DNA from: Macrostomum lignano
Lineage: Eukaryota
Assembly (NCBI GenBank): GCA_002269645.1
Contig: NIVC01001995.1
Span: 124,001 to 188,000, forward strand
Reading direction: 5' to 3'
DNA: 64,000 nt
Both the position numbers and the translations under genes were made by a program. Under the pieces are notes generated by a model. That model saw only the letters and a program-made list of their open reading frames with translations. It searched no databases and was not told the DNA's origin. This document shows positions 2,347-37,829 of this stretch, in pieces; position 1 is the first letter of the stretch, and every line of letters starts with the position of its first letter.

Positions 2347-2496
2347 CTAGCAATCTTCGCCCCCCGATGGGGGACATCTGGATAGAATCTCTGTTCTCTA
2401 CAATTAACAAAAAGACAGCCAAAAAATCCTTCACAAAGACAACAGACAAACTGCTCAAATGAAGTGAATTGCAATAAGAAATCTTCCCAAGACCAC

Positions 2497-12677: not shown

Positions 12678-13342
12678 CCGCAAGCATCCCCCAGATAGCA
12701 AGCATCCCCCAGATAGCAAGCATCCCCAAGATAGCAAGCATCCCCAGATAGCAAGCATCCCCAAGATAGCAAGCATCCCCCAGATAGCAAGCGTCCCCCA
12801 GATAGCAAGCATCCCCCAGATAGCAAGCATCCCTCAGATAGCAAGCATCCCCCAGATTTCAAGCATCCCCCAGATAGCAAGCATCCCCCGGATAGCAAGC
12901 ATTCCCCAGAGAGCAAGCATTCCCCAGATAGCAAGCATCCCTCAGATAGCAAGCATACCCCAAATAGCAAGCATCCCTCAGATAGCAAGCATCCCTCAGA
13001 TAGCAAGCATCCCCCAGATAGCAAGCATCACTCAGATAGCAAGCATCCCTCAGATAGCAAGCATCCACCAGATAGCAAGCATCCCTCAGATAGCAAGCAT
13101 CCCCCAAATTGCAAGCATCGCCCAGATAGCAAGCATCCCCCAGAAAGCAAGCATCCTCCAAATAGCAAGCATCCCCCAGATAGCAAGCATCTCTCAGATA
13201 GCAAGCATCCCTCAGATAGCAAGCATCCACCAGATAGCAAGCATCCCTCAGATAGCAAGCATCCCCCAAATTGCAAGCATCGCCCAGATAGCAAGCATCC
13301 CCCAGAAGGCAAGCATCCCCCAAATAGCAACCATCCACCAGA
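12678..13342. repeat. 18-bp minisatellite in Helitron unit 3
   Basis: Tandem CAGATAGCAAGCATCCCC copies. Confidence 0.97.
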
Positions 13343-13437
13343 CAAAAAGTAGCTAGAGCGACAATTTCCTTAGCTTTATAGTGGCTCCTTTAAATTGGCA
13401 TGGCGCTTTATACCTTTACATTTGAAATTGTATATCT

Positions 13438-15135: not shown

Positions 15136-15205
15136 TTCTTTGATGTTTAGCAGTTTTGTTGTGTTTTTAAGGTGTTTTAATAAAAAAATCTTTTTGCACT
15201 ACTAT

Positions 15206-16935: not shown

Positions 16936-18378
16936 TCAGATGGAACGGCAGATTCTGAAAATTGATCCATCTTTGTCGCACACGATAATCTCGCCAAGGT
17001 CGCGCATTTCTGGATCAACGAACATGTCTGTTGGATTGGTAGTCCTGGTGGTAATCCTATACACTTCGTCCGACATACCCGTCGCGGAGATAGGTAACCA
17101 ACTGATAACTGCATTAGAACTGGGAGCCCAGGCAACAACAACGACCCGATTATTGGCAATTACAACTGGTATAACAAAAGATGTAATTTCGATATTAGGA
17201 GAAGACATCGCAGTCAGTCTATTGGAAGTGTTACGATAACCCTGAATGCGGTATCCATTGCTTGCCACTCGGTCGACAATCAAGAGGATATTTGATTTAC
17301 AGCACCATGCAAGCCGAATTGGAAAGGTTAGTTTTACATCGGTAGTGCACTCGCTGACGTTTGTGGGATTTTTAAGACGCGCAGAATAAATACCAGCTGT
17401 AGGACAGCACATAAAAAGCTGTTGCCCAGTACTAATGGCGTCATGCAGTTGGCCCTTACGAACACGGACAAAACCCACAAGATAGCATGAATCAGATGCG
17501 CACAACAATACGCGCTTATTAAATTGATCAGCTATAATTACATACTTGCTAATTGGACAATAGCGAACACGATACGGGTTAAATTTCACCGGCGTTGCGT
17601 CTCTATTCATCAATTTTAGAGTGCCGTTTCTGGTACCGTTAGGGCTAAAAAAGCTGATTTGCTTTGTACACTGTGCGAACTCGAGAACAATTATAGAATT
17701 TGGAATGAAGGCTCCAGAAAAAATATTCAAGCTCGATTTAAATATGAGCCTAAAAGCATCGTAAACTGGCGCACTACACTCCGGCAATTTGGAGGTGTCG
17801 ATAAGTGAAACTTCTTGCAACTCTGACTCTTTTTGTGATGATGAATCAATACAATCTCTGAAACTAGAGCAAGCTTCCTCCGAGAGGGCATTTTTGGTAA
17901 ACAGTTCTGTTTGAGAAACGACTGGTGAATAAGTTGATTCACTTTCGCTAATTTTCGAATCCGGATTTTTCCTTGGCTCCCAACGAATTCTTAGAGCTTC
18001 GATCAATTTGGTCGTTTTAACTTGAACGTCAGCTGTGTTCCAGACCCCTCTTCGAGCTAACTTTCTGTCGCTGTTGATAGCATAAACCAACTCAGCTTCG
18101 ATATCGCACAGCTCATCGACAGGCAAAGTGCACTGCGGCAATTCAGAAGCCTTTTGCAGAGCGTCACGCAACTGGACCCACTTTTGTTTCCATTCCGCTT
18201 GCTCTTGAGTCACAGCAGCGCGTCTCCGCTCTAGCGCTACTGAGAGTCGTTCAAAATAATCGTCTGGAGGACCGGGTTCGTGTCCCATAGATTCCAGCAG
18301 CTGGGAGGCTATTAATGCTTTGGCGCGAACTGACTCTTCCAGTTCGCTATAGGAGCAGCCGGACAGATTCGATGCCAT
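16936..18378 (-). CDS. Gene A: single-exon 480-aa protein with an N-terminal helical/coiled domain, an S/E-rich linker and a divergent NHL-like beta-propeller
   Basis: Long ATG-initiated ORF. Motifs LLESMG, DAISTGQQL, PIRLAWC, SWLP and CDKDGS are shared with the paralogs at 19811-23101 and 24337-37688. The fold call is pattern-based inference. Confidence 0.85.
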   Translation of the reverse strand: MASNLSGCSYSELEESVRAKALIASQLLESMGHEPGPPDDYFERLSVALERRRAAVTQEQAEWKQKWVQLRDALQKASELPQCTLPVDELCDIEAELVYAINSDRKLARRGVWNTADVQVKTTKLIEALRIRWEPRKNPDSKISESESTYSPVVSQTELFTKNALSEEACSSFRDCIDSSSQKESELQEVSLIDTSKLPECSAPVYDAFRLIFKSSLNIFSGAFIPNSIIVLEFAQCTKQISFFSPNGTRNGTLKLMNRDATPVKFNPYRVRYCPISKYVIIADQFNKRVLLCASDSCYLVGFVRVRKGQLHDAISTGQQLFMCCPTAGIYSARLKNPTNVSECTTDVKLTFPIRLAWCCKSNILLIVDRVASNGYRIQGYRNTSNRLTAMSSPNIEITSFVIPVVIANNRVVVVAWAPSSNAVISWLPISATGMSDEVYRITTRTTNPTDMFVDPEMRDLGEIIVCDKDGSIFRICRSI

Positions 18379-19810
18379 TTGGAGCTAAATCATTTTTGGT
18401 GCTTTTAACCGCGCTTCTTCATGCATTGTATGAAAATTAACAGACAAGTTGTTGCTTCAATCGGTCATGTATAGTTGGTCAAGAGGGTGATGACTGCAAT
18501 ATGGGTGGAACGCTTTCCTATTCCAAGGAACTAAAAAAGTTCAGTTTCCTAAACTTCTGAAGCCGGAGTCTGTTTGAAAAGAAGATAAACTGGTCCCCAA
18601 GCCAAATACAAGTTAAAATCAAGAAATGATGAGGAAAACACAGCTTCTCGAAGAAAAAGCGAACAATTTATTGATGTTGTTGTCTTAGAGATGATATTAT
18701 ATACAATATTTAGGGCTGCTTCAGACAGAGAATATCAAGACTTGAAAAGTATACTCAGCCAAATGCTAGTCCAATACGTTTCGATAGTTCGCCTACAGCT
18801 GCTAAAGTAAAACCTTTTCAAGGAACTCTTTTCAGGGAGAACGAAAATCTTCGAAACAACTAGCTGTACTACTAACAATAATATTTTATTTACAATTCAT
18901 ATTGTACGAGCTCATTAACATACGACTTAGGATAGTGTTTGGTAAAATAAATAGAAATTATCAGACAATAGACATAAGGCTATAAAAAAATAATATCTAA
19001 TGTGTAATGTGATCTAATATCTAATATGTACATGTGCACAGTGGCTGGAAAAATGATTGGCAACAAAAAATTTTTCCTCAAAGATAAAAAGACAGCATAT
19101 ATAAGAAACCTGATTTGAGCTGGCGAAAAGTTTAAATAACTCGTTACTCCAGAAAAAAGCAAGTGTATTATCCAAATTGCAAATGGAGGAATTGTGCGAA
19201 TTACTAATTTAGGCACCAGATTATTAAGAAAATGAAATTTAATTGAAATTTAAAGCTAATATGTTGACAAATTTAATTCGCGTAAAAGGGAAAAAATCAA
19301 TGGCATAACGATAAGTCAGAAAAATCTCTTATTGAAGCTCAAAACACATAAGTTCATAAAATTTTCACCAGTGAAATATTAACAAAACAAACATTAACAT
19401 AGCATTCCTGCATACCAAAGTACAATAAATAGAATTTCAGAGGGTATCTGCAGATTCAACAATAACAAATACATATTAATGAATTAGGTTACGTATTGTA
19501 ACTCCACTTTGCTTTCGATCAACCAGCTTCACAGCAAGTAGGCCATCTTTTCGAGCAATTGCACATGAGTTTAAAGGAAGAGCCAGCTATCGTAGAAAGT
19601 TGAATTTAGATAGCAGGAACTGGGCCTGTCAAAACAAAAGAAAACCAACTGGACGTGCGTTAGCCAAAAATTAAGATCCAGCTGCTCAGCTTAACCACAA
19701 TGCGCTTGCTGATATAAAGGTGGTCGTGCTCTAATCTTGTTTTCTGCATCCGCACTGGGGATTCAAAAGTTCCCCATAAGCCATGTACCCTTATGTTAAA
19801 GAAAGCAGAT

Positions 19811-22800
19811 TCATCCATAAAGTGGACGCCGAAAGGCTAAAACGGAGCCTTTCGCATCGCAAATAATAGCTTCACCAAAGCTGCTCGTCTCCGGTGGAAG
19901 CCAGCAAATATCTCTTGGGCTAATGTCTTCAATAGTAGCGCTGCAGTGCTCAGCAGCTAGATGCATGGCATTAGTGGGAAGCCAACTAATAGTACATGTT
20001 GAATCTGAAACCCAAACAAGTACCATTTCGTCAGCTTTAAGCAGGACATTCGGCGCCACCGATGACTGAATCGTCAATCTGGGAGCCGGGAGTGCCGTCA
20101 ATTGACAGCTGTCAATCTTAAAGGCTAAAATTCTATACTCCTCAGTCTTTATAGAGGTTCGATCAACTACGAGCAGCGTTTCTGACTTGTTACACCAGGC
20201 CATTCGCACAGGACAGGAGATCTTTAAATCGGTGGAGCATAGCTTAATTTCGGTAAGGTTATCAAAAATAGCCGTGTAAATGCGACCACCAGGACAGGCA
20301 ATAATCAGCTGACGGCTTGTACAAATTGCGTCTTCAAAGCCTCCTTTAGGAACTTTAAGAGAGTGCAAGAGACGACCCGCAGGATTAACACAAGCAATTT
20401 GCTTGTTGGTGGGATGAGAAACTATAATCCACTGTCCAGTGCAGCTAAGTCTAATGCGGTAAGCAGTGATATCAACGGCTTCACCACCAAGCGTGCACAG
20501 ACGAATACTTTCTAACTTTTTACCTGTCAAGTTATAAACACTGAAGCAACCCCGGCCAGATCCTTCTGAAACGTAAATTCGATCGGAAAGAACAGCTGCA
20601 GACTTCGGCTTCGAAACTTTAAATAGTTGTAAAACATTCTGCGCGTGTGAAGCAACCTGTTCAGTTGGACCTTTTCCAGCAAATCTTTCGCTATTTATGC
20701 GAGAATTGCTGTGTAAAGTTGAGTCGCTGTGATTTTTACAGGCGGTTAGAGCTTTCACAGTGTGAGATGCGTTGTCAGTCTTCGGCATGGGACATCCTTT
20801 GATCAGCGTTTCCGAAACAACTTCTGTAAAAAAATCATTGGCAAGGCGAACTACGTCGACTGAAACATCTAAGGTGTGCAGTTCTGCATCACCTGTAAGT
20901 AGCGAAGACGCACCCATGCCAACAGCATGTTCATCCTCTCTGCTCATTACTCCTTCTGCTTCCGTCCTATCAGTTGGAGCTCTATCCGCAGCGATGCCCT
21001 CGGTTGGCTCACATTCATCTTGAGTAAGATTCGCTGCAGAATCAGATTTCGCAGATTGATGCTGCAGGCTGCTGCAAAAAATCAGGGTTTGAAGAAAGAA
21101 TTGCATTTTAGTATACAACTTACGATCTTAACGATCTCGAACTTTAATTTTCACTTAAAAATGAAAGATATAAAAAGAAAAAAATAAGAGCTTACCTGTA
21201 AGAAATAACTATAACGTAGCCTGAGTTCTTACAAACAGCAAACGTGCCCTTTTCTGTAGGCACCCAATTCATGTCGATAGGAAACGACTCTATTCCAGTT
21301 TTACAGCTTTCCAGTTCGAGCAAATCGTATTGAGCGGACATCGAGTCTGAGTTAGATGCTAACCAACTAAAAACTGCCGTAGTACCATTAAGTCTTCCAA
21401 TTACAAGTTCACTGTCATTCATGATAGCGCTGGGAATCACCGATGAGTCAATAGCCAAACTTGGAAAATCCAATAATTTTAAACCCTGATCACATAGCTG
21501 AAATGCTCGAATTCGATAACTGTCAGAGTTAGTTTCGTTAACGTCGACAACAAGCAAGGTTACAGAATTGCTGCACCATGCTAATCTCATTGGAAGCAAT
21601 GGCTCTGGAACGCCAAGAATATCGAGCTGGGATAGTTGCTCAACATTATCTAAAGAGGAAATGAATATGCCACTTGATGGAAAGCATGCAATTATATGCT
21701 GGCCTGTGCTAATCGCATCTTGTAAGCCAGAATGCGTATTTACAATAGCATCGACTATTCCATTAGGTCTGGCGCACACAATTCTATCATTGCTCTGGTC
21801 GATAAGGATAATCCATTGCTTAGTTTGACATGAGCGAAGGATACTTGGAACGCAGGCTACTTGGCGGTCATCGTGTCTTTTAAGGACAAATGCCCCGCGT
21901 GCGAAACCAGAACTCGTATACACATTAATTGGACGAGACGATGTCGATCCCAAAACATAAAACTGCTTCTTCAAGTACGTCACGGAGATGGGATTCATAA
22001 AAGTACGAAACTTCCGCACAGATATAGATCGAGAGTTAGTAAAGTCCGAATGGTTGGAAGAGAATCCATCATCGTGAGTATCAAACAGTTTAGAAGATTT
22101 AACAATGTTTCGATCTTCATAACTGCTTTGTTGGTTATAGAAAAATTGCGACGCTCCAGCTTCAGTGTCAGTGAACAAGCTTCCAGAAATCTCCGAGCAA
22201 GTAATGGCGGAGAAAGGTTCTGACCATTCAAGCCCCTGATCCCTGGAACATACAGACGCGGATTGCTCACAAGTAATGGATACATCTGTGTCTGATTTCA
22301 CAGAAGCTTGATATTCCAAAGATTCTGCATCAACCAGCTCAGTTTCTTTCTCTGTGCTGCTGTCAGCCATCCTGCTACTGATTGTCGGCTTCTCATCGAC
22401 ACTTTTGAGAGCAGATTCGTCACGTGGAGCTTCCATGCAAGCGATTTCTATGGTAGCAGCTAAAGTAGGCTGGTCGATTCTTTTCGACAAAGTATAGTCG
22501 CTTTGGTCCGATGACGCAGCGGCGAGACGGTCACCTATTTCGCTATTCTCGTCACGGTTTACAGAAGAATTCGAGTCTTTTTGGTTGTCTCTGGCACGAC
22601 CCTGAATAGAAGCTGCACATTCAGGGCCTTCTGAGTTTTGACGGGAGGCCGACTCTTTGTCAATAATCTCACTAACTTTACTTCTTCCCAATGAACTGCC
22701 AGGGCTAGCAAAAGCTTTTCAATTTTTTCTTCAATATCGATGGTGTTCCAGAATCCGCGCATGACACTGCCAGACTCTGTGACAACTTTATTGATAGCGG

Positions 22801-23101
22801 AAGTTAAATTTGCCTCAGCATGGCACAGCTGGCTGACAGTGGTGCAGGTGGACTGCTTAGCCTCGGAGGCTTCGGAAACTGCTCTTTGTAATCGCTGACG
22901 TCTCTGCGCCCAGTCCGCCAGCTCTCGGTGGATAAGCGCACGTCTACGCGCAAGGGCAAGCGACAGCTGGTCAAAAAGTTCGCTAGGCGACGCGAGCTCT
23001 GGCCCCATCGATTCCAGCAGTAACTTCCCCATGTCCAACTTGCGTTGAACGTCCAGCTGTAGCGCTTGGAGCGCGTCGCTGTTTGGATTGTTAGAGTCGA
23101 A
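19811..23101 (-). CDS. Gene B: helical domain plus two tandem propellers (~1055 aa if the 1-nt frameshift near 22690 is repaired); start exon uncertain
   Basis: Exons 23101-21196 and 21071-19811. The 124-bp intron has TACAG|GTAAGC and TTTTTGCAG|C, both phase 2, and joins in frame. Acceptor TTCTTGCAG at 23102. Exon 1 is 1906 nt, 1 nt short of the required phase. Confidence 0.75.
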
Positions 23102-23850
23102 CTGCAAGAATATCAACAAGCTACTCGTTTTATTGAATAGTGAGAATAAATCACGCATCATATCAATATCATAGAGCTCTTACACCATTTGGCAAAATAG
23201 TCTTTATGACAGTGGCTACCAAACTCGAACCTAGCTGAATGCTAAGGTCCTGCCCTTAGATATTGGTGGCGTCAAATACGATAATCTGGGGCTTAAAAAT
23301 CAACTATAAAGCTGTAGTAGCGTAAGTCCGATCGTACGTCGGAACTTTTACACTGCGGAGATAGAAGCTAAGAACGATTTTATCTTACGATGGCTTTATA
23401 GAACTTGCCCAAGTCTTTTTCTATACAATGAACCCAATTTCTAACCAGTTTTCAATGCAATCTTAGGAATACGTTTTCTAATATGATAACTACGCCCGTA
23501 CCGACTTACTTTGGTCTCTTCGAAAAAACTAAAGCTCTAGATAATGCTTTAAATGCTTTTAATAAATTAAAAAGCTGAAAGACAGGCTTAGAATTACCAA
23601 AAAGCGCAAGGCAAGCACAACGGAAACAACACAGTTGAAAACACTGGCAGTGTTTCATTTTACTTTTGCTATTTAATAGGCAGCTAATCAACACGGAGAG
23701 CGAAGCTTAGAGAATGCAACTTTAATCACCAACTGAGAAAAGCATTGTTAAATAAAGATAAAAAATAATTAAACAGTGATTTAAAAATACGATGCACATC
23801 TACGAAAACAAATAGGTTTGAAAGGAACGGGTGTCTTTATTTAAATATAT

Positions 23851-24336: not shown

Positions 24337-27300
24337 TCAACTTAGCTCAGCAATTTGCTCAACCACAACCACACTACCATTTACAGCGTCGCCAAATACA
24401 GCACCTTGACCGTTGCGAAAAGTACACAGAGCAGTTGGACGAGTCACCGAACCAATGGCAGAGTCGACGTCCTTAGCAACGGTAACAACGCCCAACCCGG
24501 AGTTGGCGAGATTAATTAGCAACAATCTGCAGACTTCTCTTATTCCATTGTCACCAAGGCAGACAGCGGCCGGCAGGATTAGTCGATCCCGGCTGTACAC
24601 CATCAGCCCAGTCAGCACCAAAGCCGACGACGTAGCAAATGGAAGCGAATTGAAGTTCAGGCGTCGGATAGGCGAAAAGGACAGCGGCGCCAGCGGAGTC
24701 CGCGCCAGGCCGCAAAGCACTACCGCCGACGGTTGCGATCCGGCCAAGGCCGCTGACGCAACAGCCAGGAGACTGTGGCTTTGGCACCAAGCCAAGCTGG
24801 CAGGCCGGCTGACGCTCAGAGATTCGCCGGACTGACGTTGCCACACGGCCGGGACGAGGCCGGGCTGGCTGGCGGCCAGCAGCAGGCAGTCGGTGTCCGG
24901 ACAGGCCACGCAGACAAGTCCGGCGTCGGATGCGGCAACATCCGTAGCACCGGTGGCAACTTCGGAGCCTTAAACAGTTATTGAAGCGTCGAAGGAGTCA
25001 TTGAAAAGTCATCGGCACTTGGCAAACCAGGGCTATAGTGGTGCATTGGCTAAGACAGGGTTTTTACACTAAGCAGATGTACAGTGGTGCAAATTGTTGT
25101 AAATTACCTTCAAGCGTCCACAGAAGACAACCCGACGGCAACTGGAAGGCGCGCACAGAGGTACTGGATTCGCCAGTTCGCGCCAAAACGAACAGCGCGC
25201 CGCGTCCACCGATGACAGCCGATCGAACCGCGCCGATTCCAGTCAGCGCAGTTAAGCTTGGCGGCAGGGGCTGCTGCTGGCCGCGAATGTCGTAGCAGCC
25301 AAGTCGACCGATTTTTTTAAAATCAGAGTCTTCCTGTTCAACCACGTACAGCCGGTCATTGTGGCAGGCAATAGAGAGCGGCGTGCCGGCGTTGGCGGTG
25401 CGAAAACGCCAGGAGTTTGCGCTACTGGAGGCGGAGGTCGAGGCTGAGACGGCGGAATTGTCGGCGCTTGAGGCAAGCGAATTGGAGCGCTGGGAATTCG
25501 CGAAAATACGAAGACTTAGTCATTGCGCCAACAAACAGATATAGAAATTTGGCACGATTCAACGAGTTTTAAAATAGGATTTTTCGTTTGATTTCATAAA
25601 ATTGTCATTTGATTTCGTCCATAGAAGTTGGCAGCGCGGCCATAGAGTCCACGGCAATAAAGTGCGCTGTTTTCCGATTGAATTCATAACTTTGCCACTT
25701 CATTTCGACTTGACGCGCGGAGTGACTCAAACACTGCCAGAGGGGGCTGGGATATCAGTGGGTGAATATCTATGGCCAAACCTCTCATAGAAATGAAAAG
25801 CCTATATGAACGTGTCCTCTTCTTGGGCAACAGTCACCTTCCTTGTGTGCCTAAAAATGTCTGCATACGCGTCCATTGGAAACGTATAAACGCGGCCAAT
25901 CGTATTCAACTGCGAACTCTGCCACCGTACTCTCCATTTCTTAACGCCGCGGAGCAGGCACACAGTTGTCTCAAGGCTTCGCTTAAACGCCAGCTAGCAA
26001 CACCTGAGCTTCAACAGGAACTTAGCAATCCGCCTGATGGCATCAACCTAACGCAGTGGAGACTCATGGTGCTTTTCCGCTGCGGCTACGTTGCAATAGA
26101 GGAAATTTCCGCCGCGAAGTGCCTTGCCTGCATGGGAACGACATGTGATGCGGTTTTTGCCCCTGTGCATCAATGAGCAGCAGATAATGTGAAATTTGTA
26201 GCGTGTTGCAGCGAACGAGCATTAACTTTGGCGGACATAACTGATTTCACTGTTGCAACTGCCTACTTCCTCGTGTGACTTAAATACACAGCTTTCTGTT
26301 TTTAACAGTTCTTTCTGTACTGGACAAGCGCATCGACTATTCTGTTGCCTTTCTACTGGGTATGTCGAAATGAAGTGGCAAAGCCATGAACTCAATCGGA
26401 AAACAGCGCACTTTATTGCCATAGACTCTATGGCCGCGCTGCCAACTTCTATGGACGAAATCAAATGACAATTCCATGAAATCAAACGAAAAATCCTAAA
26501 TTAATTATAGAGTAATACATCTCCTTTTGAAATCCGTTTGATTTTTACTTGATTAAAATCCCAGACACTAAACTGGTTCATAGACGGCAGCAGTCTGACG
26601 TAGCAGCGTGGGAGATGTTACACAGACAAACCATAGACAACAGAAATCAATTTGGGCATCAATAACTGAGCCACAGGTGGAATGCATGACTAAAGTAAAG
26701 AATGTCACAGAGAGGACCAAAAACGCCGAAATCAGTCTGGTGGAAAGAAAGAGAATCGTGAATGCATGCGTGACTGGTGGTTTGGAGTTTGGTGTTCGTG
26801 AAAGAAAGCAAATCGATGGAGACGACGAATAGAATAAAAACGACAAGATTTCACACTAAAAGGCGCCAAAAGTAGTATTAAAAATCGCCTAGGAGTCTCT
26901 TTTGTAGCGTCTTATTGTCTGCGACTTTGAAACGACTCTGATGCGACGCAAGTGACCCTGCCGCGACGGTATAACGACTCTGGGGCCGTAGACTCGTATT
27001 CGAAGCGTGCTATAGTCGTGTTTGAAGCGCATTTGCGTCGCATGATGAATTAGAGTGACATTTGTTTTTTTTATTAGAGGCAGGGGGGTTGTGTGCACCC
27101 TGGCGCACTTTAAGCGACATAGGCACACAACCGGCGAGAGGCATTGCTGCCCATTCCGCCGACTCCCCTGAGCAGGCATACAAGCGCGCGGATACGTACG
27201 CAGGCACACACTCACACAGGAGTGTACAGCGGCCCTAACTTTATATTATCGTTAGGCATGTACACTTCACTGCGCCTTGGGGGGTTGGTTGGCTCTCAAG

Positions 27301-30300
27301 GCCGTTAATTGCACGAGCAGAGCCAAGCCGAAATTCCAATTCAGCCCCAAATTAATGTGACTGCACTTGGAATCGAGCCTGGGTCGCTGGCACACCAGAG
27401 CAGCTGCGCTACCGCTGGGCTACGGCCCCCCTAGAAAAATGTATGCGGCCAACACACACGATTCTTGGATTCTATCAAGACTTACGCGTTTGAGTCGTTA
27501 AAGTAAGTCACAAAAGTGACTCCAGAGTCGTTTTCTAAAACCTAGTCTAATCAATTTTTCCAAAAAACGAATAAAGTTTCGGACTGAGACTCGACCTTGG
27601 ATAGTTGTGATGCAGAAAATTTTAGAGCTTCTCAATCAATTTTCATCGGGAATGGTCTTGTTTAAGATAAAACGAGCAGCTTGTTTTTGAAGTTTCTTTA
27701 GGGAGTAACCCGTCGAACTTTTCACCCAGAATTTTTTCCGGAATTTCGTGACCCGGGCCCGATTTTTAATTGATTTCCAGGTGAACGCCCGGATCAGCTT
27801 TTTTGGCCCGGAACAGCCCCTTTTCCCGGAAAAAGATCCGGAAATATGTTCCGGTAAAATTACGGGAAAAGGAAAGCTGTTCCGGTTGGATTTTCCGGAA
27901 TTTTTCACTCGGAACACTATGGAATTCTGGGTGTACACCCGAATTTCAGTAGTGTTCCGGGTGAAAATGTTCCGGGTGAGATTTCGGGACTTCAGTCGGA
28001 ATTCTCCAGTGATCCGGACCAAATGATCCGGAAAATTCACCCGGATCAGCTCCCTTGACCCGAATTTCAGCCAAATTCCGGGCGAAGCTGATCCGGGAAA
28101 ATTTCGGGACTTGAGTCGGAATCAATCCGGCATCCATTATACAAGTACCGTGGGGATTTTGAGAGGAAGCCTCCGATGGAAAACCGCTGAATACAGACCC
28201 CAGCAAATGGGTATCCCATCAGGCAATCCCTGGCATCCATTTGGTCAACGGCGCTAATTCCTCTTGGAAAGCGAGGGGTAATAAAGCCTCGAAATTGCAA
28301 TATGAATTGATCTGCTTTTCGGCGGCTCTGTAGTGTCCGTAATGTGAGGCTGAGCCCATCCTCCGTACAGGTGACAATTGAAAAATTGTTGCGCCCTGTT
28401 TGTGTGCGAGAGGTTTGACTTCCACTGGCATGTAGTCTATCACAGCTGCTTAGTGTGTCAACGGTCTGAATGATTCTATCGTCATATTTGACGCTTAGAA
28501 GCATAAAATCAGCCAACCATATTGTTTGGCACAGCTGGGTGTCTAGACGGAGACTGTGGCATGGTTCCAAATAGCTCTAACTGGCCCAGTATGCAAAGCA
28601 GCTTTCCTATTAAGATAGACGCTAATCCGATTTTTGTCGGTACATGCTTCCAGTGGTTTGTCTAAGGCGTTTGCAGTTGCACCAGCCGTGAGCAGATCCC
28701 GTCTAGAGTAGTCTATACGGACTACTATGGTCGGTAACCATATCGTGTGGCTCAAGGCAGCTGATAAGCTGACCCGCGATGGATAATCAATCCTCGCTTC
28801 TGTTGTGGCTCAAGGCAGCTGATAAGCTGACCTGCGATGGATAATCAATCCTCGCTTCTGTTGTGGCTCAAGGCAGCTGATAAGCTGACCTGCGATGGAT
28901 AATCAATCCTCGCTTCTGTTGTGGCTCAAGGCAGCTGCTAAGCTGACCTGCGATGGATAATCAATCCTCGCTTCTGTTGTGGCTCAAGGCAGCTGATAAG
29001 CTGACCTGCGATGGATAATCAATTCTCGCTTCTGTTGTGGCTCAAGGCAGCTGCTAAGCTGACCTGCGATGGATAATCATTAATCAATCCTCGCTTCTGT
29101 TGTGGCTCAAGGCAGCTGCTAAGCTGACCTGCGATGGATAATCAATCCTCGCTTCTGTTGTGGCTCAAGGCAGCTGCTAAGCTGACCTGCGATGGATAAT
29201 CAATCCTCGCTTCTGTTGTGGCTCAAGGCAGCTGATAAGCTGACCTGCGAGGGGTAATAAAGCCTCGCTTTGATGAGACAACTTATCTGCTTTACGGCGG
29301 CACTGTAGCGTCCGTAATGTGAGGCTGAGCCCATCCTCCGTACAGGTGACAATTGAAAAATTGTTGCGCCCTGTTTGTGTGCGAGAGGTTTGACTTCCAC
29401 TGGCATGTAGTCTATCACAGCTGCTTAGTGTGTCAACGGTCTGAATGATTCTATCGTCATATTTGACGCTTAGAAGCATAAAATCAGCCAACCATATTGT
29501 TTGGCACAGCTGGGTGTCTAGACGGAGACTGTGGCATGGTTCCAAATAGCTCTAACTGGCCCAGTATGCAAAGCAGCTTTCCTATTAAGATAGACGCTAA
29601 TCCGATTTTTGTCGGTACATGCTTCCAGTGGTTTGTCTAAGGCGTTTGCAGTTGCACCAGCCGTGAGCAGATCCCGTCTAGAGTAGTCTATACGGACTAC
29701 TATGGTCGGTAACCATATCGTGTGGCTCAAGGCAGCTGATAAGCTGACCCGCGATGGATAATCAATCCTCGCTTCTGTTGTGGCTCAAGGCAGCTGATAA
29801 GCTGACCTGCGATGGATAATCAATCCTCGCTTCTGTTGTGGCTCAAGGCAGCTGATAAGCTGACCTGCGATGGATAATCAATCCTCGCTTCTGTTGTGGC
29901 TCAAGGCAGCTGCTAAGCTGACCTGCGATGGATAATCAATCCTCGCTTCTGTTGTGGCTCAAGGCAGCTTATAAGCTGACCTGCGATGGATAATCCTCGC
30001 TTCTGTTGTGGCTCAAGGCAGCTGATAAGCTGACCTGCGATGGATAATCAATTCTCGCTTCTGTTGTGGCTCAAGGCAGCTGCTAAGCTGACCTGCGATG
30101 GATAATCAATCCTCGCTTCTGTTGTGGCTCAAGGCAGCTGCTAAGCTGACCTGCGATGGATAATCAATCCTCGCTTCTGTTGTGGCTCAAGGCAGCTGAT
30201 AAGCTGACCTGCGAGGGGTAATAAAGCCTCGCTTTGATGAGACAACTTATCTGCTTTACGGCGGCACTGTAGCGTCCGTAATGTGAGGCTGAGCCCATCC

Positions 30301-33300
30301 TCCGTACAGGTGACAATTGAAAAATTGTTGCGCCCTGTTTGTGTGCGAGAGGTTTGACTTCCACTGGCATGTAGTCTATCACAGCTGCTTAGTGTGTCAA
30401 CGGTCTGAATGATTCTATCGTCATATTTGACGCTTAGAAGCATAAAATCAGCCAACCATATTGTTTGGCACAGCTGGGTGTCTAGACGGAGACTGTGGCA
30501 TGGTTCCAAATAGCTCTAACTGGCCCAGTATGCAAAGCAGCTTTCCTATTAAGATAGACGCTAATCCGATTTTTGTCGGTACATGCTTCCAGTGGTTTGT
30601 CTAAGGCGTTTGCAGTTGCACCAGCCGTGAGCAGATCACGTTGTCACGGCTGCTAACAAGAGTACCGGATCCCGGTATTCCGCCACTCTCTGGAAGGGGC
30701 CTTTGGATAGAAAGGCCCAAGCGATTGAAGCGACTGCTTTGGCGCGTGTGCCGTCGCAGCAACCGCAGCCGTCACGAAGCCCGTCATGCACTACAATGAT
30801 GGATCAGATTCGGGCCCAAGGCGAAGCCGAGGACGAACTGTGTACGTTTTTTATGCATATACTAGAAGACGTTAGCAGCCTCGTATATATATAAGTGTTG
30901 TCGATTCTTAAGTTTGAATCTGCTTCGCCACTCTCCTCATTTTTATGTACTTAATAGGCCATCAATTGAGCGGAGTTCGTGAAAAGCTGTCGGAGGCTCA
31001 AGCCGAAAATCGTCAGATGAATGAAAGCTGAAGTTCTTCGATTGGAAGCTATCTCCGCTACGAGCTCGTCGGAATCCGACACGACCGTGGCGAGAAGCCA
31101 GGCAGTGCTCTTTCAATCTCGGCCAGCCGCAGAGCGGCAAAAGAAGGCGGACCAGGTGAAGGCGCGACGAATCGCCAGTGCTGCCGAAAATGAGGGGCCG
31201 ACTTCTGGAAACATATATTTCCAGACGGCGAGCTACTCGAGGAGTGAAATGCGGGCGATGTCCAAGATCGAGTGCATAACACCACCACCGCATTTATTTG
31301 CAATTAATTTCTAGGTTTTTGTTAAGGCCAAATTTGCTGGGTTCGATTTCATTAGAAACGCTCTTCGAGACATTGGCTGTCTACATTTATGAGCCCTGAT
31401 AGGTCCTGGAAAATGAGACAAAAGTCGTTCCTTAATTTTTGCGGAGATCTTTACAATTCTTAAGCAAGTGAATAGACAAGTCAGCTGACTTGAGTTAACT
31501 AGCTAATTAGCTGTATAGCGAGTGACCCACCTGACAGATGCAATCAGAGGTAGGCGATGGGGATCCCTGAAGAGTAGCCAATGTCGCGATAAGGTATATA
31601 AAACCGCATACGGCTTCAAAAAAAGTTAATGGTAGCATCGAAGTCCAGCTGCCCATCCGAGTGACATTCAGAAGGTCAGCATTTTTTGTTTCTGAAAGTA
31701 CGTAGAAGTGCATAGAAATATACGATTTGCAGTTGTGCACAACTGAATTCAGTATTTCTGTTCGTGGACGGCTAAATCGAATTCGATTCAATTCGTAGTC
31801 GTGGAAAATGTATGGAACAATGACCCGTTCTTTATTTAATTTTCTGCTACTGTGATAAGCCCAAGATTTGGCTGCAAATCCGGTTCAATCATCCAGAATT
31901 CACCTGGATTCGTGTGCTAATCCGGTTCACTCTCCCGGAATTCGCCCGGATTTGTGTGCTGATCCGGTTCACTCGAACGGAATTAGCCCGGATTTGTGTG
32001 CTGATCCGGTTCACTCGCCCGGAATTGTGTGCTGATCCGGTTCACTCGCCCGGAATTAGCCCGGATTTGTGTGCTGATCCGGTTCACTCGCCCGGAATAT
32101 TCGATTCAATTCGTAGTCGTGGAAAATGTATGGAACAATGACCCGTTCTTTATTTAATTTTCTGCTACTGTGATAAGCCCAAGATTTGGCTGCAAATCCG
32201 GTTCAATCATCCAGAATTCACCTGGATTCGTGTGCTAATCCGGTTCACTCTCCCGGAATTCGCCCGGATTTGTGTGCTGATCCGGTTCACTCGAACGGAA
32301 TTAGCCCGGATTTGTGTGCTGATCCGGTTCACTCGCCCGGAATTGTGTGCTGATCCGGTTCACTCGCCCGGAATTAGCCCGGATTTGTGTGCTGATCCGG
32401 TTCACTCGCCCGGAATTAGCCCGGATTTGTGTGCTGATCCGGTTCACTCGCCCGAAATTAGCCCGGATTTGTGTGCTGATCCGGTTCACTTGCCCGGAAT
32501 TGTGTGCTGATCCGGTTCACTCGCCCGGAATTGTGTGCTGATCCGGTTCACTCGCCCGGAATTCGCCCGGATTTGTGTGCTGATCCGGTTCACTCGCCCG
32601 GAATTAGCCCGGATTTGTGTGCTGATCCGGTTCACTCGCCCGAAATTAGCCCGGATTTGTGTGCTGATCCGGTTCACTCGCCCGGAATTGTGTGCTGATC
32701 CGGTTCACTCGCCCGGATTCGGCTGCAGATCCGGTTCACTCGCCCGGATTCGGCTGCAGATCCGGTTCACTCGCCCGGAATTCGCCCGGAACTGTCACCG
32801 AAATTTTTTTATTGATCCGGGTCAATTTTCCGGAATTTTTCTTTTTGATCCGGAAAATTCGCCCGGATTCTGTAAACTTTCGTTACAGATCCGGAATTTC
32901 CACCCGGATCGGATTGCATTACTGGAATATGAAAAAATTCCGGGTGAACGCAAAAAATTCCGGGCGAAATTCCGGGTGAAAAGTTCGACGGGAAATATTC
33001 AGAGCACCGGCCCATATAATTCGTACAGAAGTAAATCCCAGGAAGGAGCCGACACCCATGGACAAAATTAACACTAGAATACTCATTAAGTTACCCATAT
33101 TGCATTTTAGGCTGGCATGATTTTGCTTATAGTTCAGTGACCTCTCTGGGGAATATACGCGTATAACATCTATGGCGACGCATTCACTTACGTTAGCTAA
33201 AACAGCACGGTAAGGAGGTTCACTGGCAACCAGTTGCTTTGCCTCATCATTGGCCGTCTTTGCCTCTATTCTGGCGCTGATATTGGCTTTAACTGTGTCG

Positions 33301-36300
33301 CCAGTGCCGCCAGCAGCTGAGAAGGACTCAGTCAACGGTATGAACAGGCTGGAAAGGCGAAGTGCAGCACCTGAGATAACAGTGCTGACTGACCTGATTG
33401 AACTTGCAGCTGGCAAGAGAAGCGGTTCAATGCCGTCAGCGGAACGGAAGCCGCAATTTGGGCAGGCAAGGTCGCGAGTTCGAGAATCCTGTAGCGCGAC
33501 GAGACAAGGTGCGCAGAACACGTGGCCGCAAGGCATCCGTCTCGGATCAATAAACGACGCGTTGCAGACGTTGCAGGTTTGAGTGATGTCCCTCTTCTGC
33601 TGCGCCTTGTCTGGGAGAGCATTTTCTTGACTGGACAGGCTGCAGTTTTTTAGATTGGCTGTGTAACCAGTGTTATTTGTCTCTTCATTAACATTGGATT
33701 GAGCACTAGCCATTTCTGAAGCTTTCACCGACAAAGAAGATACTTTGGGAGCAGCAGCCATCGACGCAGTGATACTAGAGGCACTAAACGTCTCAATGCT
33801 TGGCCCAGCAGAAGATTTTTGCTTACGCGCAGTGGACACAGCAACTGTTGCCACGTCAGCTGTAGCCGACTGATTCGCTAAGTTGGCCGGTTCTCTAAAG
33901 GAAAATGAAAAGAAAGGAAGTTGAAATCTAGTCGCGGAACAAGTCTATAGAATTAATTTAAGAATAAATAACCGAAATTATACTTTTAGCCGAGTCAGAC
34001 ATTCGATTTATCCATCTGATTCTAGATATGCTTACGAAGGTACCTAAAAAGTTTTTGGACTTGACCCTTTTTGAGCAAAGTCAGTGCACCAAACTTTCAC
34101 ACCTTTTCAGAGTACCCCCCACTCTGAATGCAGCGCTCCATACAAAGAAACCAGGCTTGAAAGCACTGGGACCACTTTTTAGGCATAGGCACCTCTTCTA
34201 GAGCCTGTAGGGAGGCTCTGTAGGCTTCCTCTTCGTCATGGAATTAAAGTTTTTCTGTTTTTCCTTGGCTAGTGCAAACAACAAGTAGTCCCACGGTGCC
34301 AAGTCAGGAGAATAAGGCGGATGGGGAAGCAGCTGAATGGATTTCTGAGCCATGAAATCCACATTGCGAGCTGCTGTGTGTGCACAATGGCATTTTCGTG
34401 GTGCCACAACAGACCGCACGTTCCGCTGCGAGGTCTCTTCTCGCGCCACTTCTGCAGAACCTCTGGAACGCATACTGTTGTGTACCATTCTGCATTGACT
34501 GTTCTTTGCTTATTAAGTGGCACAATCGCCAAATCGCCTGTTATGGAGAAGAAAGTGGCGACCATCTTTGAGTTAAAAAGCTAAAAATTTAGGAAATGAC
34601 CGAGGAAAGGATGTTCGAGTCCAAAAAATGTTTAGGTACCCTCGTATAATAGCCAACGCTTCAAATTAGGTTGCCTATTTGCTATAGGAAAGGCACAACA
34701 TATCGAAAGGTGAACATTGGGTCTGCCTCCTATCAGAAGCAATAACAATTTTAATATGAAAAAAGTGAAGTTTCTATCTCCGCAGTGTATTGTTCAGCGA
34801 AAACCAGCCTCTTTAACATTTTCTAAGAAACGTAGTTTACCGCCCTACTACTTTGAGTAGTCCTTGGCCGACACACAAAAGCACTACTCACGCTGGCCTA
34901 TCAATAAACAGTACGGAGCCGAGCTTGTCCCAGACTGCCACAGTCTGGCAGTTGTCATCGTCACTCGTGCTTGTCACATCGGCTGGCAGGCACTGCGCCA
35001 GCTGCACATGGCGCACCGAGTAATCATCTAGCGAGGTGGCGCCCGGCGGCAGCCAGCTGACAACTAACCGGCCGAGCCAGTAGCGCGCCACAACCAGCTC
35101 GCCATCTGCGCGCACCAGCAGCGCCGGCAGAGTGGCCGATTGAAGAGATACACAAGGCCGCTGGGCTGGCCGAAATTCCGCTGTTGAAGTGGCCGAGTTT
35201 GCATTGATTTTATAAGCGCGGATCGAATACTCGGAGCTGCTGTCGGCTAATTGGTCTATGACCAGCAGCAGCCTGTACTGCCGGCACCAGAACAGGCGCT
35301 TGGGCTGCACGGGTGCGTTGGACTTAAATGTGCACCTGTTGGTGATGTTAAATCAGCATTAGGAATGTAAATAGGGAATGTCAACCAAAGCACCGGGATG
35401 TAGCCAATCTATAACTTGTTCGACTAGCCGATTAGAGAGGCCGTGACATCTCACCCATACCCCTCCTTTGAAGAAGCTTTGGACTTTTATAGGATAGGAA
35501 ATTTATCGGAGTCTACAAATTGACTGCCTCAAATTCTAACCAATTTGAAAAAAAGAATATAAAAAAGAAATTAAAGTAACTCTTCATGCGATTTTTTACA
35601 CATCAATACAATGTCGTGTGCTGTCAAGAAAGCTTTCACCAACCCTGTTGTATACCTAAGGTCAACTTTGTTAGAAAGACTGAAACTTTCTAAGCTGTAT
35701 GCCAACATGTGTAAGCCAAGGACTGCTCAACTAGAAGGACGGGGAAACTAATTTTCTTAGAAAACGTTAAGGAGGCCTAAGGTTTTGCCGAAAAATACAC
35801 TACAGAGATAGGACCTTTTCCTTTTTTCATATTAAAATTGCTATTGCTTTCGATAGGAGGCAGAGCCAATGTTCAGCTTTTGATATGTTTTGCCCTTCTT
35901 ATAGCTCTATTGATATTTTTATTCTACGTACAATTGCATATGTCCTGTGCCTAAAAACCATTAAAATGGCACGGCTCGGCTCACTGGTTTTATGAATATA
36001 TTTTAATATCTCAGCTGACTGTGTAAGAATATGTGTGACAGAGATGATAAAATAGATTCATAAAACCAGAGTCGAGCAGTGCCATGCATTTTTATGACTT
36101 CTAGGTACAGGGAATGTACGTAGAATAAAAATCTAACATAGAATCCTAATTTTCTGAAGAAAAAAATCTTTATTAATATCAATAGAGCTATAGGAAAGGC
36201 AAAAAATATCAAACTGCCTCCTATCGAAAGCAATAACAATTTCAAAATGAAAAAGTGAAAAGCTCCTATCTCTGTAGTGCATGTTTTTCGAAAAAACATG

Positions 36301-37688
36301 CCTTTTCGGCCCTTGTAGCTGAGTAGTCCTTGGTGTAAGTTAGCATATTCATGATTGTTTATTCCTACGTACAACATCGTCCAAAAACCGCTAGTTTTAT
36401 AATCATGGTGGCTATGCCACCAAGAAGTGCATCTCGAATCCACCGATGGACTTATTTAGGTCTGGGATTAAGATATTGTTGTATTTTAATCGAAGTAAAA
36501 ATGATGACATGTATTCATTTTGCTAACACACCTGTTCAAACCGCTTCCTTTATCAACAGGGGCAGTGTAAAATTGGTTGCGCTCAGAGCAGACAATCAGG
36601 TGTTGCCCAGTGCTAACAACGTCCACCAAGTCAGCCAAAATGCCAGCCACAGCGGTAACTTGGCCGCTGGTCTTGGCCCAGGCCACCCGCTTGTGCCCGG
36701 CATCGAGCAGGATCAGGCGATTCGACACGCGGCAGGCGGCAACCCGAACCGGCCAGGTCACTTTTTTGTCGGAAAATTTCACTTTTCCAATGCTACGAAT
36801 CGCCGAACAATTTTCGTCGCTACTAAGCGAATAGGCCACAAGGCGAACTTGTTCGATACCGCGAGAACCGGACACTTCTAGGCAGTAGTAGGTGTCCCCG
36901 AGGCGGGTTGCAGAAATCAGAGGTGAAAGAAGACGGACTGACTTGGACTGAGTTATTGCTCCAAAAAGAGCTGCATTTGATCTGCCCGACTCAGCAATAG
37001 AACCTGCATTTGATCTGCCCGACTCAGCAACAGAACCTGCATTTGATCTGCCCGACTCAGCAACAGAACCTGCATTTGATCTGCCCGACTCAGCAACAGA
37101 ACCTGCATTTGATCTGCCCGACTCAGCAACAGAACCTGCAGTTGATCTGCCCGACTCAGCAACAGAACCTGCAGTTGATCTGCCAGACGCCGACTCACTT
37201 AAACACCCAGAATTCGCAACAGAAGAAGCTAAAGTCGAACTGTTTGAATTCGAGGCAGAATCAGAAGAGCTCAGTACAGCATCTGCTGCAGTTTTCGCCG
37301 ACTGTCTCGGTGACTGCACCGGATTTTGGTCAACTTTGCTACCAAAATGTACCAACGAATAGCCGCCCCCAGCAACCGGAACAAAGGCGGCGGTCCTGTA
37401 ACTGTCTGGCACAGGCGTCCATCGCAGTTCTAAACAGCGCATGAGCCTGGCAACTACGGACTTTAACTCGGCATCAGATTCTCTGCTTAATTTGTTCTCT
37501 ACCGAGCAGTTCCGAGTAAGCTGTGCGAGTTGCCCTGAGAGACGGGCGAAAAAAGCATCAATGTTTGTCTGGCAACAGCCGGCCGACTCTGTGGCGTCAA
37601 GGAGTCGACGAACAACGTCAGCCTTCTGACGGAGTCGCTGCCGGGCAAGCCGCACCGGGATCAGCTGACTATCAGCTGACTCTTGCAT
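24337..37688 (-). CDS. Gene D: 5-exon ~1105-aa protein with architecture helical domain - propeller - C3HC4 RING - propeller (probable E3 ubiquitin ligase)
   Basis: Exons 37688-36532, 35335-34892, 33894-33192, 25489-25108 and 24968-24337. All junctions are GT-AG with matching phases (2, 2, 0, 1). Total 3318 nt = 1106 codons. The exon 3-4 join across 7.7 kb is the least certain. Confidence 0.72.
25577..26496 (+). mobile_element. Internally deleted Tc1/IS630-type DNA transposon with ~135-bp TIRs
   Basis: Inverted arms at 25575-25709 and 26364-26498 have TA at both outer ends. The internal ORF 25772-26176 contains LPPYSPFLNAAE, the DDE_3-type LPPYSPxLNPIE motif. Confidence 0.85.
26870..27600. 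repeat. Interspersed element rich in GCGAC/GTCAC motifs, related to 44715-45330 and interrupted by a SINE
   Basis: Shared short motifs (gcgac...gtgac...gcgacggtat; gttttctaaa) with the 45000-45330 region. Ends not resolved. Confidence 0.35.
27200..27431 (-). mobile_element. tRNA-derived SINE
   Basis: Minus strand begins GGGGGCCGTAGCCCAGCGGTAG (A box) ... GGCTCGATTCC (B box). The 3' part resembles 37830-37930. Confidence 0.75.
28272..30640. repeat. Macro-repeat: three copies of a ~470-bp unit (28272, 29249, 30213; the last truncated) alternating with two arrays of a 58-bp repeat (28746-29248, 29721-30212)
   Basis: The 58-bp period was confirmed at 28746, 28804, 28862, 28920, 28978 and 29036. 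Unit copies 2 and 3 are near-identical, while copy 1 differs in its first ~60 bp. Confidence 0.95.
31782..32790. repeat. Subterminal 27/40-bp repeats (GTGCTGATCCGGTTCACTCGCCCGGAATT...) plus a ~318-bp tandem duplication (31782 and 32100)
   Basis: Read directly. Confidence 0.9.
33192..33894 (-). CDS. RING-finger exon (exon 3 of gene D)
   Basis: CNVC...CGHVFC..C...CPNC is a C3HC4 RING. Acceptor TTTTCCTTTAG|A at 33895 and donor AAC|GTAAGT at 33191. Confidence 0.85.
34035..34644 (-). mobile_element. Internally deleted mariner (DD34D-type) element, 610 bp
   Basis: Imperfect ~28-bp TIRs (CGAAGGTACCTAAAAAGTTTTTGGAC / GTCCAAAAAATGTTTAGGTACCCTCG) with TA on both sides. Fragments TVNAEWY, LLWHHENA and HPPYSPDLAP; frameshifted. 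Confidence 0.9.
34680..36345. repeat. Three copies of a ~200-bp intronic repeat: 34680-34875 (+), 35700-35915 (-), 36175-36345 (+)
   Basis: Shared core ctgcctcctatc(g)aaagcaataacaattt...aaaaagtgaa...ctatctc and flank gagtagtccttgg. The middle copy is inverted. Confidence 0.8.
36965..37190 (-). repeat. Coding 33-bp VNTR (AGSVAESGRSN, about 6.5 copies) in exon 1 of gene D
   Basis: In-frame 11-aa repeat in the linker between the helical domain and the propeller. Confidence 0.9.
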
Positions 37689-37829
37689 GGTCGGGCTGTT
37701 GACCTGAAAATGATTTATTAATATTATGACCAGTAAATTAATTGTATGATTAAAAACTCAAGGAACTACACCAATCTAATCAAGTAGTAAGAACAATTTT
37801 GCCATCCTGTCTAAGCACAACTTACACAA

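Follow-up and report, generated by a model that had tools for sequence, protein, structure and literature searches.

A Macrostomum lignano gene in which a lineage-restricted NHL-like propeller unit appears fused to a RING finger

The window, a 64,000-nucleotide stretch of M. lignano contig NIVC01001995.1, contains five minus-strand exons (37688-36532, 35335-34892, 33894-33192, 25489-25108, and 24968-24337) that joined into a stop-free ORF of 3318 nt encoding 1105 aa. The sequence-only reading had placed four phase-matched junctions here and a coding total that is an exact multiple of three, and both proposals held: the exon lengths (1157, 444, 703, 382, and 632 nt) sum to 3318 nt, or 1105 codons plus the stop with no internal stops, and every intron is of the GT..AG type. 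These are intron 1 (36531-35336; AACAG/GTGTGT...AACAG/G), intron 2 (34891-33895; GC/GTGAGT...TTTAG/A), intron 3 (33191-25490; AAC/GTAAGT...CCCAG/CGC), and intron 4 (25107-24969; AAG/GTAATT...TTAAG/GC), with intron 3, predicted at ~7.7 kb, measuring 7702 nt. Three sites deviate from the species consensus of GT[G/A]AG and CAG: the donors of exon 1 (GTGTGT) and exon 4 (GTAATT) and the acceptor of exon 5 (AAG). A stop closes the frame of each exon 1-23 codons beyond its splice sites, the sole exception being the exon-3 donor, past which the frame stays open for 90 codons, and the joining of the five exons exceeds chance.

Exon 1 begins with the ATG at 37688 and encodes a helical N-terminus, a Ser/Ala-rich low-complexity region, and the first blades of a β-propeller (propeller 1), the remainder of which is encoded by exon 2 and extends to residue 534. 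Because the exon-2 donor is GC/GTGAGT, an unspliced read through it gives Ala followed by TGA. Exon 3 encodes a disordered linker, a RING finger, and a short helical linker; exon 4 a Ser-rich linker and the beginning of a β-rich C-terminal domain; and exon 5 the rest of that domain, ending at the TGA stop at 24337-24339. Upstream of the ATG, a putative spliced-leader (SL) trans-splice acceptor, TTTTCAG (37704..37710, minus strand), would start exon sequence at 37703, 15 nt before the ATG. It matches the trans-acceptor motif described for M. lignano, [T/C]TNCAG (PMC8629364), and an ATG at the SL end would be in frame with the focal ORF (MVNSPT-MQES...); this acceptor may be in use.

Positions 24337-37688, corresponding to NIVC01001995.1:148337-161688, are the annotated range of BOX15_Mlig007912g2, whose product (PAA61812.1 / A0A267EM25) uses the same joins. 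The earlier proposal of a ~1105-aa protein agrees with the window sequence but not with the deposited product, which has 1083 aa because PAA61812.1 lacks two 33-nt exon-1 repeat units (22 aa); the two proteins are otherwise identical. The M. lignano annotation was built from RNA-seq using StringTie/TACO and a de novo transcriptome, and in the TBONE step its units were split at trans-splice and poly(A) sites that had been mapped experimentally (PMC5730564). Transcript support is second-hand, through a published pipeline that can chain neighboring genes and that joins two of the paralogues described below. GenBank and UniProt have carried the gene model since 2017, which makes the five-exon join a confirmation and not a discovery. 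The suffix of the gene name ('.g2') implies a multi-gene transcription unit. A literature search on the gene identifiers returned no match, and the product is an uncharacterized, lineage-restricted RING protein.

A homeologous locus (L001) preserves the same five exons, with GT..AG at each junction, identical phases, and an intact ORF of 3171 nt. Together with the RNA-seq-based annotation, these conserved joins support the reading that the five ORFs belong to one gene. Exons of the two copies are 93.5-99.7% identical, with in-frame indels only, and intron identity is 74-90%, with numerous gaps and with lengths of 3440, 1686, 2786, and 170 nt in the homeolog versus 1196, 997, 7702, and 139 nt in the focal gene. 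Overall dN/dS between the copies was 0.40, on about 97 substitutions, which indicates moderate constraint only; values of 0.7-0.9 near the RING finger and its preceding linker come from very few changes. The C-terminal domain is the most conserved part (98.2% amino-acid identity), exon 5 is 99.7% identical with no synonymous differences, and all eight zinc ligands of the RING are kept in both homeologs.

The large size of intron 3 is ascribed to two DNA-transposon insertions specific to the focal homeolog. At least four elements had been claimed in this intron, which overstates their number: two are clearly bounded by terminal inverted repeats (TIRs). One is 936 bp long (25569..26504), with 141-nt TIRs and a DDE_3 transposase remnant; the other spans 5284 bp (27709..32992), with 38-nt TIRs, and contains 2.4 copies of a ~975-bp unit, inside which lies a 58-bp minisatellite, plus 42/31-bp minisatellites. 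Other repetitive DNA in intron 3 consists of tandem arrays within the larger element. Both elements are missing from the homeolog, which has a precise empty site for 27709..32992.

The proposed order of a helical region, a propeller, and a RING finger was upheld. AlphaFold2 predicted three helices at residues 9-35, 41-64, and 69-89, at low confidence (pLDDT 40-50). These are followed, in the Ser/Ala-rich region, by a 33-nt tandem repeat of 6.6 copies (36971..37188, minus strand) encoding (SVAESGRSNAG)n, of which the GenBank product has two fewer 11-aa units than the window model and the homeolog five fewer. On the coding strand, each 33-nt unit has GT at its start and AG at its end; the 66 nt missing from the GenBank product may be either a real intron or an artefact of mapping. 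Propeller 1 starts at about residue 254 (position 36929, within exon 1), and residues 254-534 were modeled as a 24-strand β domain (AlphaFold2, pLDDT 65-85) whose top Foldseek matches were the NHL propellers of Thin, Brat, TRIM71, and TRIM2 (target-normalized TM-score 0.6-0.7, E down to 3e-10). A profile built from the paralogues matched the NHL domains of Thin (best, E=2.3e-4), TRIM71, Brat, and NHLRC2; the Pfam NHL repeat model gave no match to propeller 1. The sequence profile, the AlphaFold2 model, and the Foldseek matches support assignment of residues ~254-534 as a six-bladed NHL-like propeller.

The RING finger (residues 641-681; 33453..33575, minus strand) is of the C3HC4 type and matched Pfam zf-RING_UBOX (1.2e-7) and zf-C3HC4 (5.6e-7), both above the Pfam cut-offs. 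Its eight zinc ligands are complete and canonically spaced (C-x2-C-x11-C-x-H-x2-C-x2-C-x13-C-x2-C), within the general rule C-x2-C-x(9-39)-C-x(1-3)-H-x(2-3)-C-x2-C-x(4-48)-C-x2-C, and its matches included the RINGs of CBL, TRIM69, and TRIM39. Many active RINGs have an Arg/Lys 'linchpin' after the last cysteine; here that cysteine is followed directly by Gly. We infer a function as a RING-type E3 ubiquitin ligase, in which the RING would bring in a ubiquitin-charged E2 and the propeller or propellers would bind a protein or RNA substrate, in the manner of TRIM-NHL proteins and malin.

A second propeller had also been proposed after the RING, and in this analysis it stays a candidate. The C-terminal 340 residues are β-rich in two AlphaFold2 models, both with pLDDT <50 there; one of these, a single-sequence model of the RING plus C-terminal region, had a pLDDT of 34 and a predicted helix at residues ~733-770 (pLDDT <50). 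Foldseek with this single-sequence model returned no match at E <0.4, Pfam and PDB sequence searches with the C-terminal domain returned none, and hhalign put the probability of a match to the propeller-1 family at 4.6%. The domain has two weak collinear motif matches to the propeller-1 family profile, at a score reached in 2 of 2000 shuffles (p~0.001), and the exon-5 motif RPASLAWCQSHSLLAV resembles the family motif P-x-R-L-A-W-C..S..LLVVD. Judged by these motifs, the C-terminal β-rich domain probably represents another propeller of this family that has diverged strongly.

Downstream of the focal gene lie three tandem paralogous units on the same strand (16936..23161), each comprising the helical and NHL-like propeller part only: A (ORFs 22559-23161 and 21192-22691), B (19811-21118), and C (16936-18378, 480 aa). 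The window thus holds four helical-propeller units in tandem, and GenBank joins A and B as one product. By tblastn (E values of 1e-13 to 1e-17) and alignment, A, B, and C match the focal protein only at its helical N-terminus and at residues ~244-534, and the end-to-end paralogue alignment has 24 invariant columns. The focal gene shares with the family an alignable helical N-terminus and propeller and the P-x-R-L-A-W-C...LLVVD and SWLP motifs. In word-indexed homology searches, queries with the whole protein and with exons 3-5 retrieved M. lignano copies only, and an exhaustive HMMER search of 1.84 billion representative proteins found no relative outside M. lignano, the remaining matches being RING-only or low-complexity.

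In all four copies the propeller domain ends in one alignment column, occupied by a true stop in B and C and by a phase-2 donor in the focal gene and A. Since B and C stop where exon 2 ends, the focal gene has the appearance of a propeller unit fused onto a RING module. The base unit of this Macrostomum-restricted family is a helical N-terminus followed by a six-bladed NHL-like β-propeller; in the focal copy, the point at which B and C stop has probably become a phase-2 splice donor, which joins the propeller unit to three exons encoding a linker, the C3HC4 RING, and the C-terminal β-rich domain. We had also considered the stop codon within the exon-2 donor as a relic of an ancestral stop. This idea was dropped, as any phase-2 GTRAGT donor reads xxG-TRA; an in-frame stop is expected there and says little about history. 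It is the paralogue end points that suggest a fusion.

We consider it likely that the locus is one real, expressed five-exon gene, in which a Macrostomum-restricted propeller unit is fused to the RING of a putative E3 ligase and intron 3 is inflated by transposons. An unlikely alternative is that it comprises two genes or yields two main products, with exons 1-2 encoding a 534-aa helical-propeller protein and exons 3-5 a RING and β-domain protein from Met579, for which SL trans-splicing at the exon-3 acceptor is a possible route, and with the exon 2-3 join being a minor read-through or chimeric transcript raised to a gene model by annotation. The stops of B and C at the exon-2 end column fit this alternative, and retention of intron 2 would lead at once to Ala-TGA, with an ATTAAA 137 nt downstream, although the in-frame stop itself is common to phase-2 GTRAGT introns. 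Polycistronic precursors make up about 7% of M. lignano transcripts (PMC5730564), and the annotation likewise chains A and B through a similar donor; yet TBONE cuts at mapped SL sites, and the gene came through intact in both homeologs. From the exon-3 acceptor up to the in-frame Met579 no frame contains an ATG, which favors two products, but that acceptor is TTTAG and not the [T/C]TNCAG trans-acceptor motif, the terminal ATG of an SL added there would open a 13-codon out-of-frame uORF, and in the homeolog the junction is kept in the same phase, with no indels in the 44 codons that lead up to Met579.

It is less probable still that the locus is a decaying or non-functional fusion, a recent chimera that is transcribed under little selection while intron 3 fills with transposons. 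The overall dN/dS and its higher values around the RING and preceding linker, the lack of homologues among the representative proteins searched outside M. lignano, the pair of transposon insertions, and the occurrence of several splice sites off the consensus would all fit decay. Against it, both homeologs retain an ORF of more than 3.1 kb with in-frame indels only, all splice sites, and intact RING ligands, and it is the C-terminal domain that is best conserved.

As a single gene, the focal protein is most readily compared with the TRIM-NHL proteins (TRIM2/3/32/71, Drosophila Thin, Brat, and Mei-P26, and C. elegans NHL-2/LIN-41), with which it has in common a RING, an NHL-type propeller of six blades, and a helical stretch ahead of the propeller, and which supply the best profile and structural matches of propeller 1. 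The sequence-only reading took the architecture to be novel; what the searches show is the lack of a homologue outside M. lignano among 1.84 billion representative proteins and a domain order that breaks the TRIM-NHL rule. The RING, at residues 641-681 of the 1105, comes behind the helical region and propeller and not at the N-terminus, and a second β-rich domain follows it. TRIM-NHL proteins have one or two B-boxes after the RING, of which a Pfam scan (E up to 1) found none here, and a coiled coil preceding the C-terminal domain, for which the low-confidence helices at residues 9-89 and ~733-770 would be the candidates. The focal protein also differs in having no Pfam NHL match and no sequence-detectable orthology to these proteins. 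In NHLRC1/malin, the RING is followed directly by NHL repeats, and there is no B-box or coiled coil. Focal exons 3-5 alone would give the same minimal layout of RING, short helical linker, and β-rich domain; unlike malin, however, the C-terminal domain has no PDB, Pfam, or Foldseek match to an NHL propeller, and the RING module is fused behind another propeller. The neighboring family members have the tandem location, strand, and domain end point of the focal gene; their identity to it is 24-28% across the aligned part of the propeller and 26-30% in local matches by tblastn. A homologous helical N-terminus and propeller occur both in PAA61810.1 / PAA91373.1 (ordered helical, propeller, linker, propeller) and in paralogue C, and the A+B product likewise joins two propellers through a phase-2 donor. 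In contrast to the focal gene, whose inter-propeller exon carries a RING, PAA61810.1 / PAA91373.1 and paralogue C have none.

A more elaborate possibility, which we regard as doubtful, is a lineage-specific E3 assembled by exon-level chaining of tandem NHL-propeller genes, with its RING between two substrate-binding propellers and with splicing or retention of intron 2 switching the output. If so, retention would yield a non-catalytic helical-propeller protein like the paralogues and splicing a RING-armed double-propeller ligase, and the short form could compete with or regulate the long form.

The five ORFs that had seemed scattered are an ordinary intron-containing gene, and its evolutionary side is mildly interesting. 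Neighboring units of a taxon-restricted tandem family of NHL-like propellers appear to have been linked into chains by splicing where the protein used to end, and one chain appears to have captured a RING finger, giving a RING/NHL protein with a non-TRIM domain order. The locus may thus offer a small, clean example of how a new multidomain E3 architecture would arise through gene fusion in a recently duplicated genome.

The sequence-only reading joined five minus-strand ORFs into one protein of ~1105 amino acids, and all four splice junctions that it quoted were located on that strand. The exons occupy positions 37688-36532 (exon 1, with the ATG at 37688), 35335-34892 (exon 2), 33894-33192 (exon 3), 25489-25108 (exon 4), and 24968-24337 (exon 5, ending in a TGA stop). 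The length arithmetic was also correct, as the 3318-nt join comprises 1105 codons followed by TGA and is free of internal stops. Stops close the exon frames 1-23 codons outside the splice sites, except past the exon-3 donor, where the frame continues into the intron for 90 codons.

A first homology search returned one protein, a 637-residue M. lignano fragment that begins with exon 2's first whole codon and contains junctions 2-3, 3-4, and 4-5 as in our model. A sequence-cluster member listing then gave two full-length GenBank models, PAA61812.1 (A0A267EM25; BOX15_Mlig007912g2; 1083 residues) and PAA91374.1 (BOX15_Mlig013203g1; 1055 residues, partial). PAA61812.1 is identical to the 1105-residue model save for two fewer 11-residue repeat units; its annotated range on NIVC01001995.1 (GCA_002269645.1) is 13,352 nt, the exact length of window 24337-37688, and its neighbors match those in the window (a PRP4 homolog upstream, 833- and 480-residue genes downstream). 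Because the M. lignano annotation was built from RNA-seq (StringTie, TACO) and a de novo transcriptome, with experimentally mapped spliced-leader and poly(A) sites used to split transcription units into genes (PMC5730564), the five-exon join is already public and transcript-derived, with transcript support by way of the published annotation. Its difference from the genomic translation of this contig is exactly two 33-nt units (22 residues) of the exon-1 repeat (window 36971-37188), which are missing from PAA61812.1; the homeolog has five fewer units. This unit has GT at its start and AG at its end on the coding strand, and a 66-nt gap would therefore score as a canonical intron; instead of being a real intron, the gap may be an artifact of mapping a collapsed or allelic transcript.

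Polyploidy in M. lignano is recent, and the five-exon structure recurs at the homeologous locus (contig NIVC01000089.1), where every intron is bounded by GT..AG, the phases are unchanged, and the 3171-nt ORF is intact. Exons of the two copies are 93.5-99.7% identical with only in-frame indels, whereas introns align partially, at 74-90% identity with many gaps, and measure 3440, 1686, 2786, and 170 nt in the homeolog versus 1196, 997, 7702, and 139 nt in the window. By the Nei-Gojobori method, dN/dS was 0.40 overall (44.8 synonymous and 52.2 non-synonymous changes) and 0.26-0.55 for exons 1-4; exon 5 had no synonymous differences and thus no ratio. Judged from sequence, this divergence pattern is that of a coding gene under moderate constraint. 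Exon 5 and its counterpart (homeolog 20619-21250) have ~173 synonymous sites, at which the dS of 0.05-0.08 elsewhere in the gene predicts ~12 differences (Poisson P ~5e-6); the surrounding block is 95% identical overall. The absence of synonymous change in this alignment suggests recent gene conversion between homeologs or nucleotide-level constraint.

Intron 3 has the 7.7-kb size originally reported, but instead of at least four transposons, comparison with the homeolog delimited two insertions specific to the window copy that enlarge it: a 936-bp element (25569-26504) with 141-nt terminal inverted repeats and a DDE_3 remnant, and a 5284-bp element (27709-32992) with 38-nt inverted repeats at its ends and a precise empty site in the homeolog. 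The other repeats lie inside this second element (a ~975-bp unit present 2.4 times with a 58-bp minisatellite, plus 42- and 31-bp arrays), as does a GenBank-annotated 97-residue ORF on the opposite strand (31021-31314, +), which lacks a recorded Pfam match and probably either derives from the element or is spurious. Introns 1 and 2, longer in the homeolog by 2.2 and 0.7 kb, contain a mariner/Tc1-like DDE_3 remnant (LPHPPYSPDLAPWDY...) and related inverted repeat copies (34198-34565, 34681-34875, 35708-35905, and 36187-36294). Most of the first 15 kb of the window is filled by interleaved arrays of a 23-bp satellite, with up to 296 copies and strong GC/AT skew, and of 18-bp repeats (1-1738, 3161-9973, 11003-11950, and 13435-15148; also 2496-3068 and 12680-13342).

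A RING (residues 641-681) was the only Pfam domain found; all eight ligands are present (C-x2-C-x11-C-x-H-x2-C-x2-C-x13-C-x2-C), and PDB sequence matches were to RING domains of CBL, TRIM69, TRIM39, TRIM2, and others. Three helices were predicted with low confidence for residues 9-89, and residues ~130-243, including the repeat, are of low complexity. Residues 254-534 were modeled as 24 beta strands (pLDDT 65-85, from an alignment that included three paralogs in the window). Top Foldseek matches were the NHL propellers of Thin, Brat, TRIM71, TRIM2, Mei-P26, and NHL-2 (E 3e-10 to 1e-7; target-normalized TM-score 0.6-0.7), ranking above seven-bladed WD40 proteins. Independently, an HMM of the four paralogous domains matched the Thin NHL domain best (E=2.3e-4), with TRIM71, Brat, and NHLRC2 next. 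These results establish a genuine, NHL-like first propeller. Of the proposed RING between two propellers, this domain and the RING stand, but the second propeller was not established: the C-terminal 340 residues (exons 4-5) had pLDDT <50 in both AlphaFold2 models, which were beta-rich though poor, and no match in Foldseek, Pfam, or PDB. Against the family profile, this region gave two collinear matches with a score reached by 2 of 2000 shuffles, and its RPASLAWCQSHSLLAV segment aligns with the family's P-x-R-L-A-W-C..S..LLVVD. On balance, these matches tip slightly toward a second propeller.

Searching the window with the model by tblastn revealed three more same-strand (minus) units just downstream of the focal gene: A (21192-22691, plus a helical ORF at 22559-23161), B (19811-21118), and C (16936-18378). 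Local matches covered only residues ~244-534, at 26-30% identity; the N-terminal helical regions are also alignable. In an end-to-end alignment, all four domains share an end column, at which B and C have true stop codons and A and the focal gene have phase-2 donors (AG|GTAAGC and GC|GTGAGT, respectively); therefore, the family unit is helix plus propeller. Neighboring units would have become linked by splicing where the protein used to end, with the chained part carrying the RING in the focal gene. GenBank chains A to B through the phase-2 donor. The resulting two-propeller protein (19811-23161; donor TACAG|GTAAGC, read unspliced as Arg-TAA) has 833 residues here (PAA61810.1, modeled without the helical exon) and 1054 in the homeolog (PAA91373.1, modeled with a helical N-terminus). 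We discounted the in-frame stop inside the exon-2 donor as a trace of this history, as any phase-2 GTRAGT donor has one.

Could exons 1-2 instead be a complete paralog-like gene, and exons 3-5 an independent RING gene whose translation starts at Met579 in exon 3? The exon-2 end coincides with the true stops of B and C, the species makes polycistronic precursor transcripts, and no ATG in any frame of exon 3 precedes Met579. Nevertheless, an annotation pipeline that cuts at spliced-leader sites left one gene in both homeologs, the homeolog keeps the exon 2-3 junction and its phase, the exon-3 acceptor (TTTAG) departs from the trans-acceptor motif [T/C]TNCAG, and the leader's terminal ATG would start a short out-of-frame uORF there. 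We consider two genes improbable; a short intron-retention isoform may accompany the long form. By contrast, the TTTTCAG acceptor that precedes the ATG at 37688 by 15 nt matches the trans-splice motif and would place the leader ATG in frame. The same-strand upstream neighbor, a PRP4-type WD40 gene (U4/U6 snRNP; 38750-41000, minus), has its stop ~1.05 kb from this putative acceptor; the two genes could be organized as an operon-like unit, in keeping with the '.g2' suffix of the gene name. Long spurious ORFs there arise from a 28-bp tandem repeat (39023-39553).

Among 1.84 billion representative proteins searched exhaustively with HMMER, relatives came only from M. lignano; all remaining matches were to the RING alone or the low-complexity repeat. 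TRIM-NHL proteins and malin suggest by analogy that the protein would work as a RING/NHL ligase, its RING binding a ubiquitin-loaded E2 and its propeller(s) recognizing a target, either protein or RNA. Active RINGs commonly have an Arg/Lys linchpin after the last cysteine, whereas this RING has Gly. The protein falls outside the TRIM-NHL group in both RING position and B-box. The gene model is already known; its domain order is an apparently undescribed variant that probably arose by fusion inside a lineage-specific tandem family.
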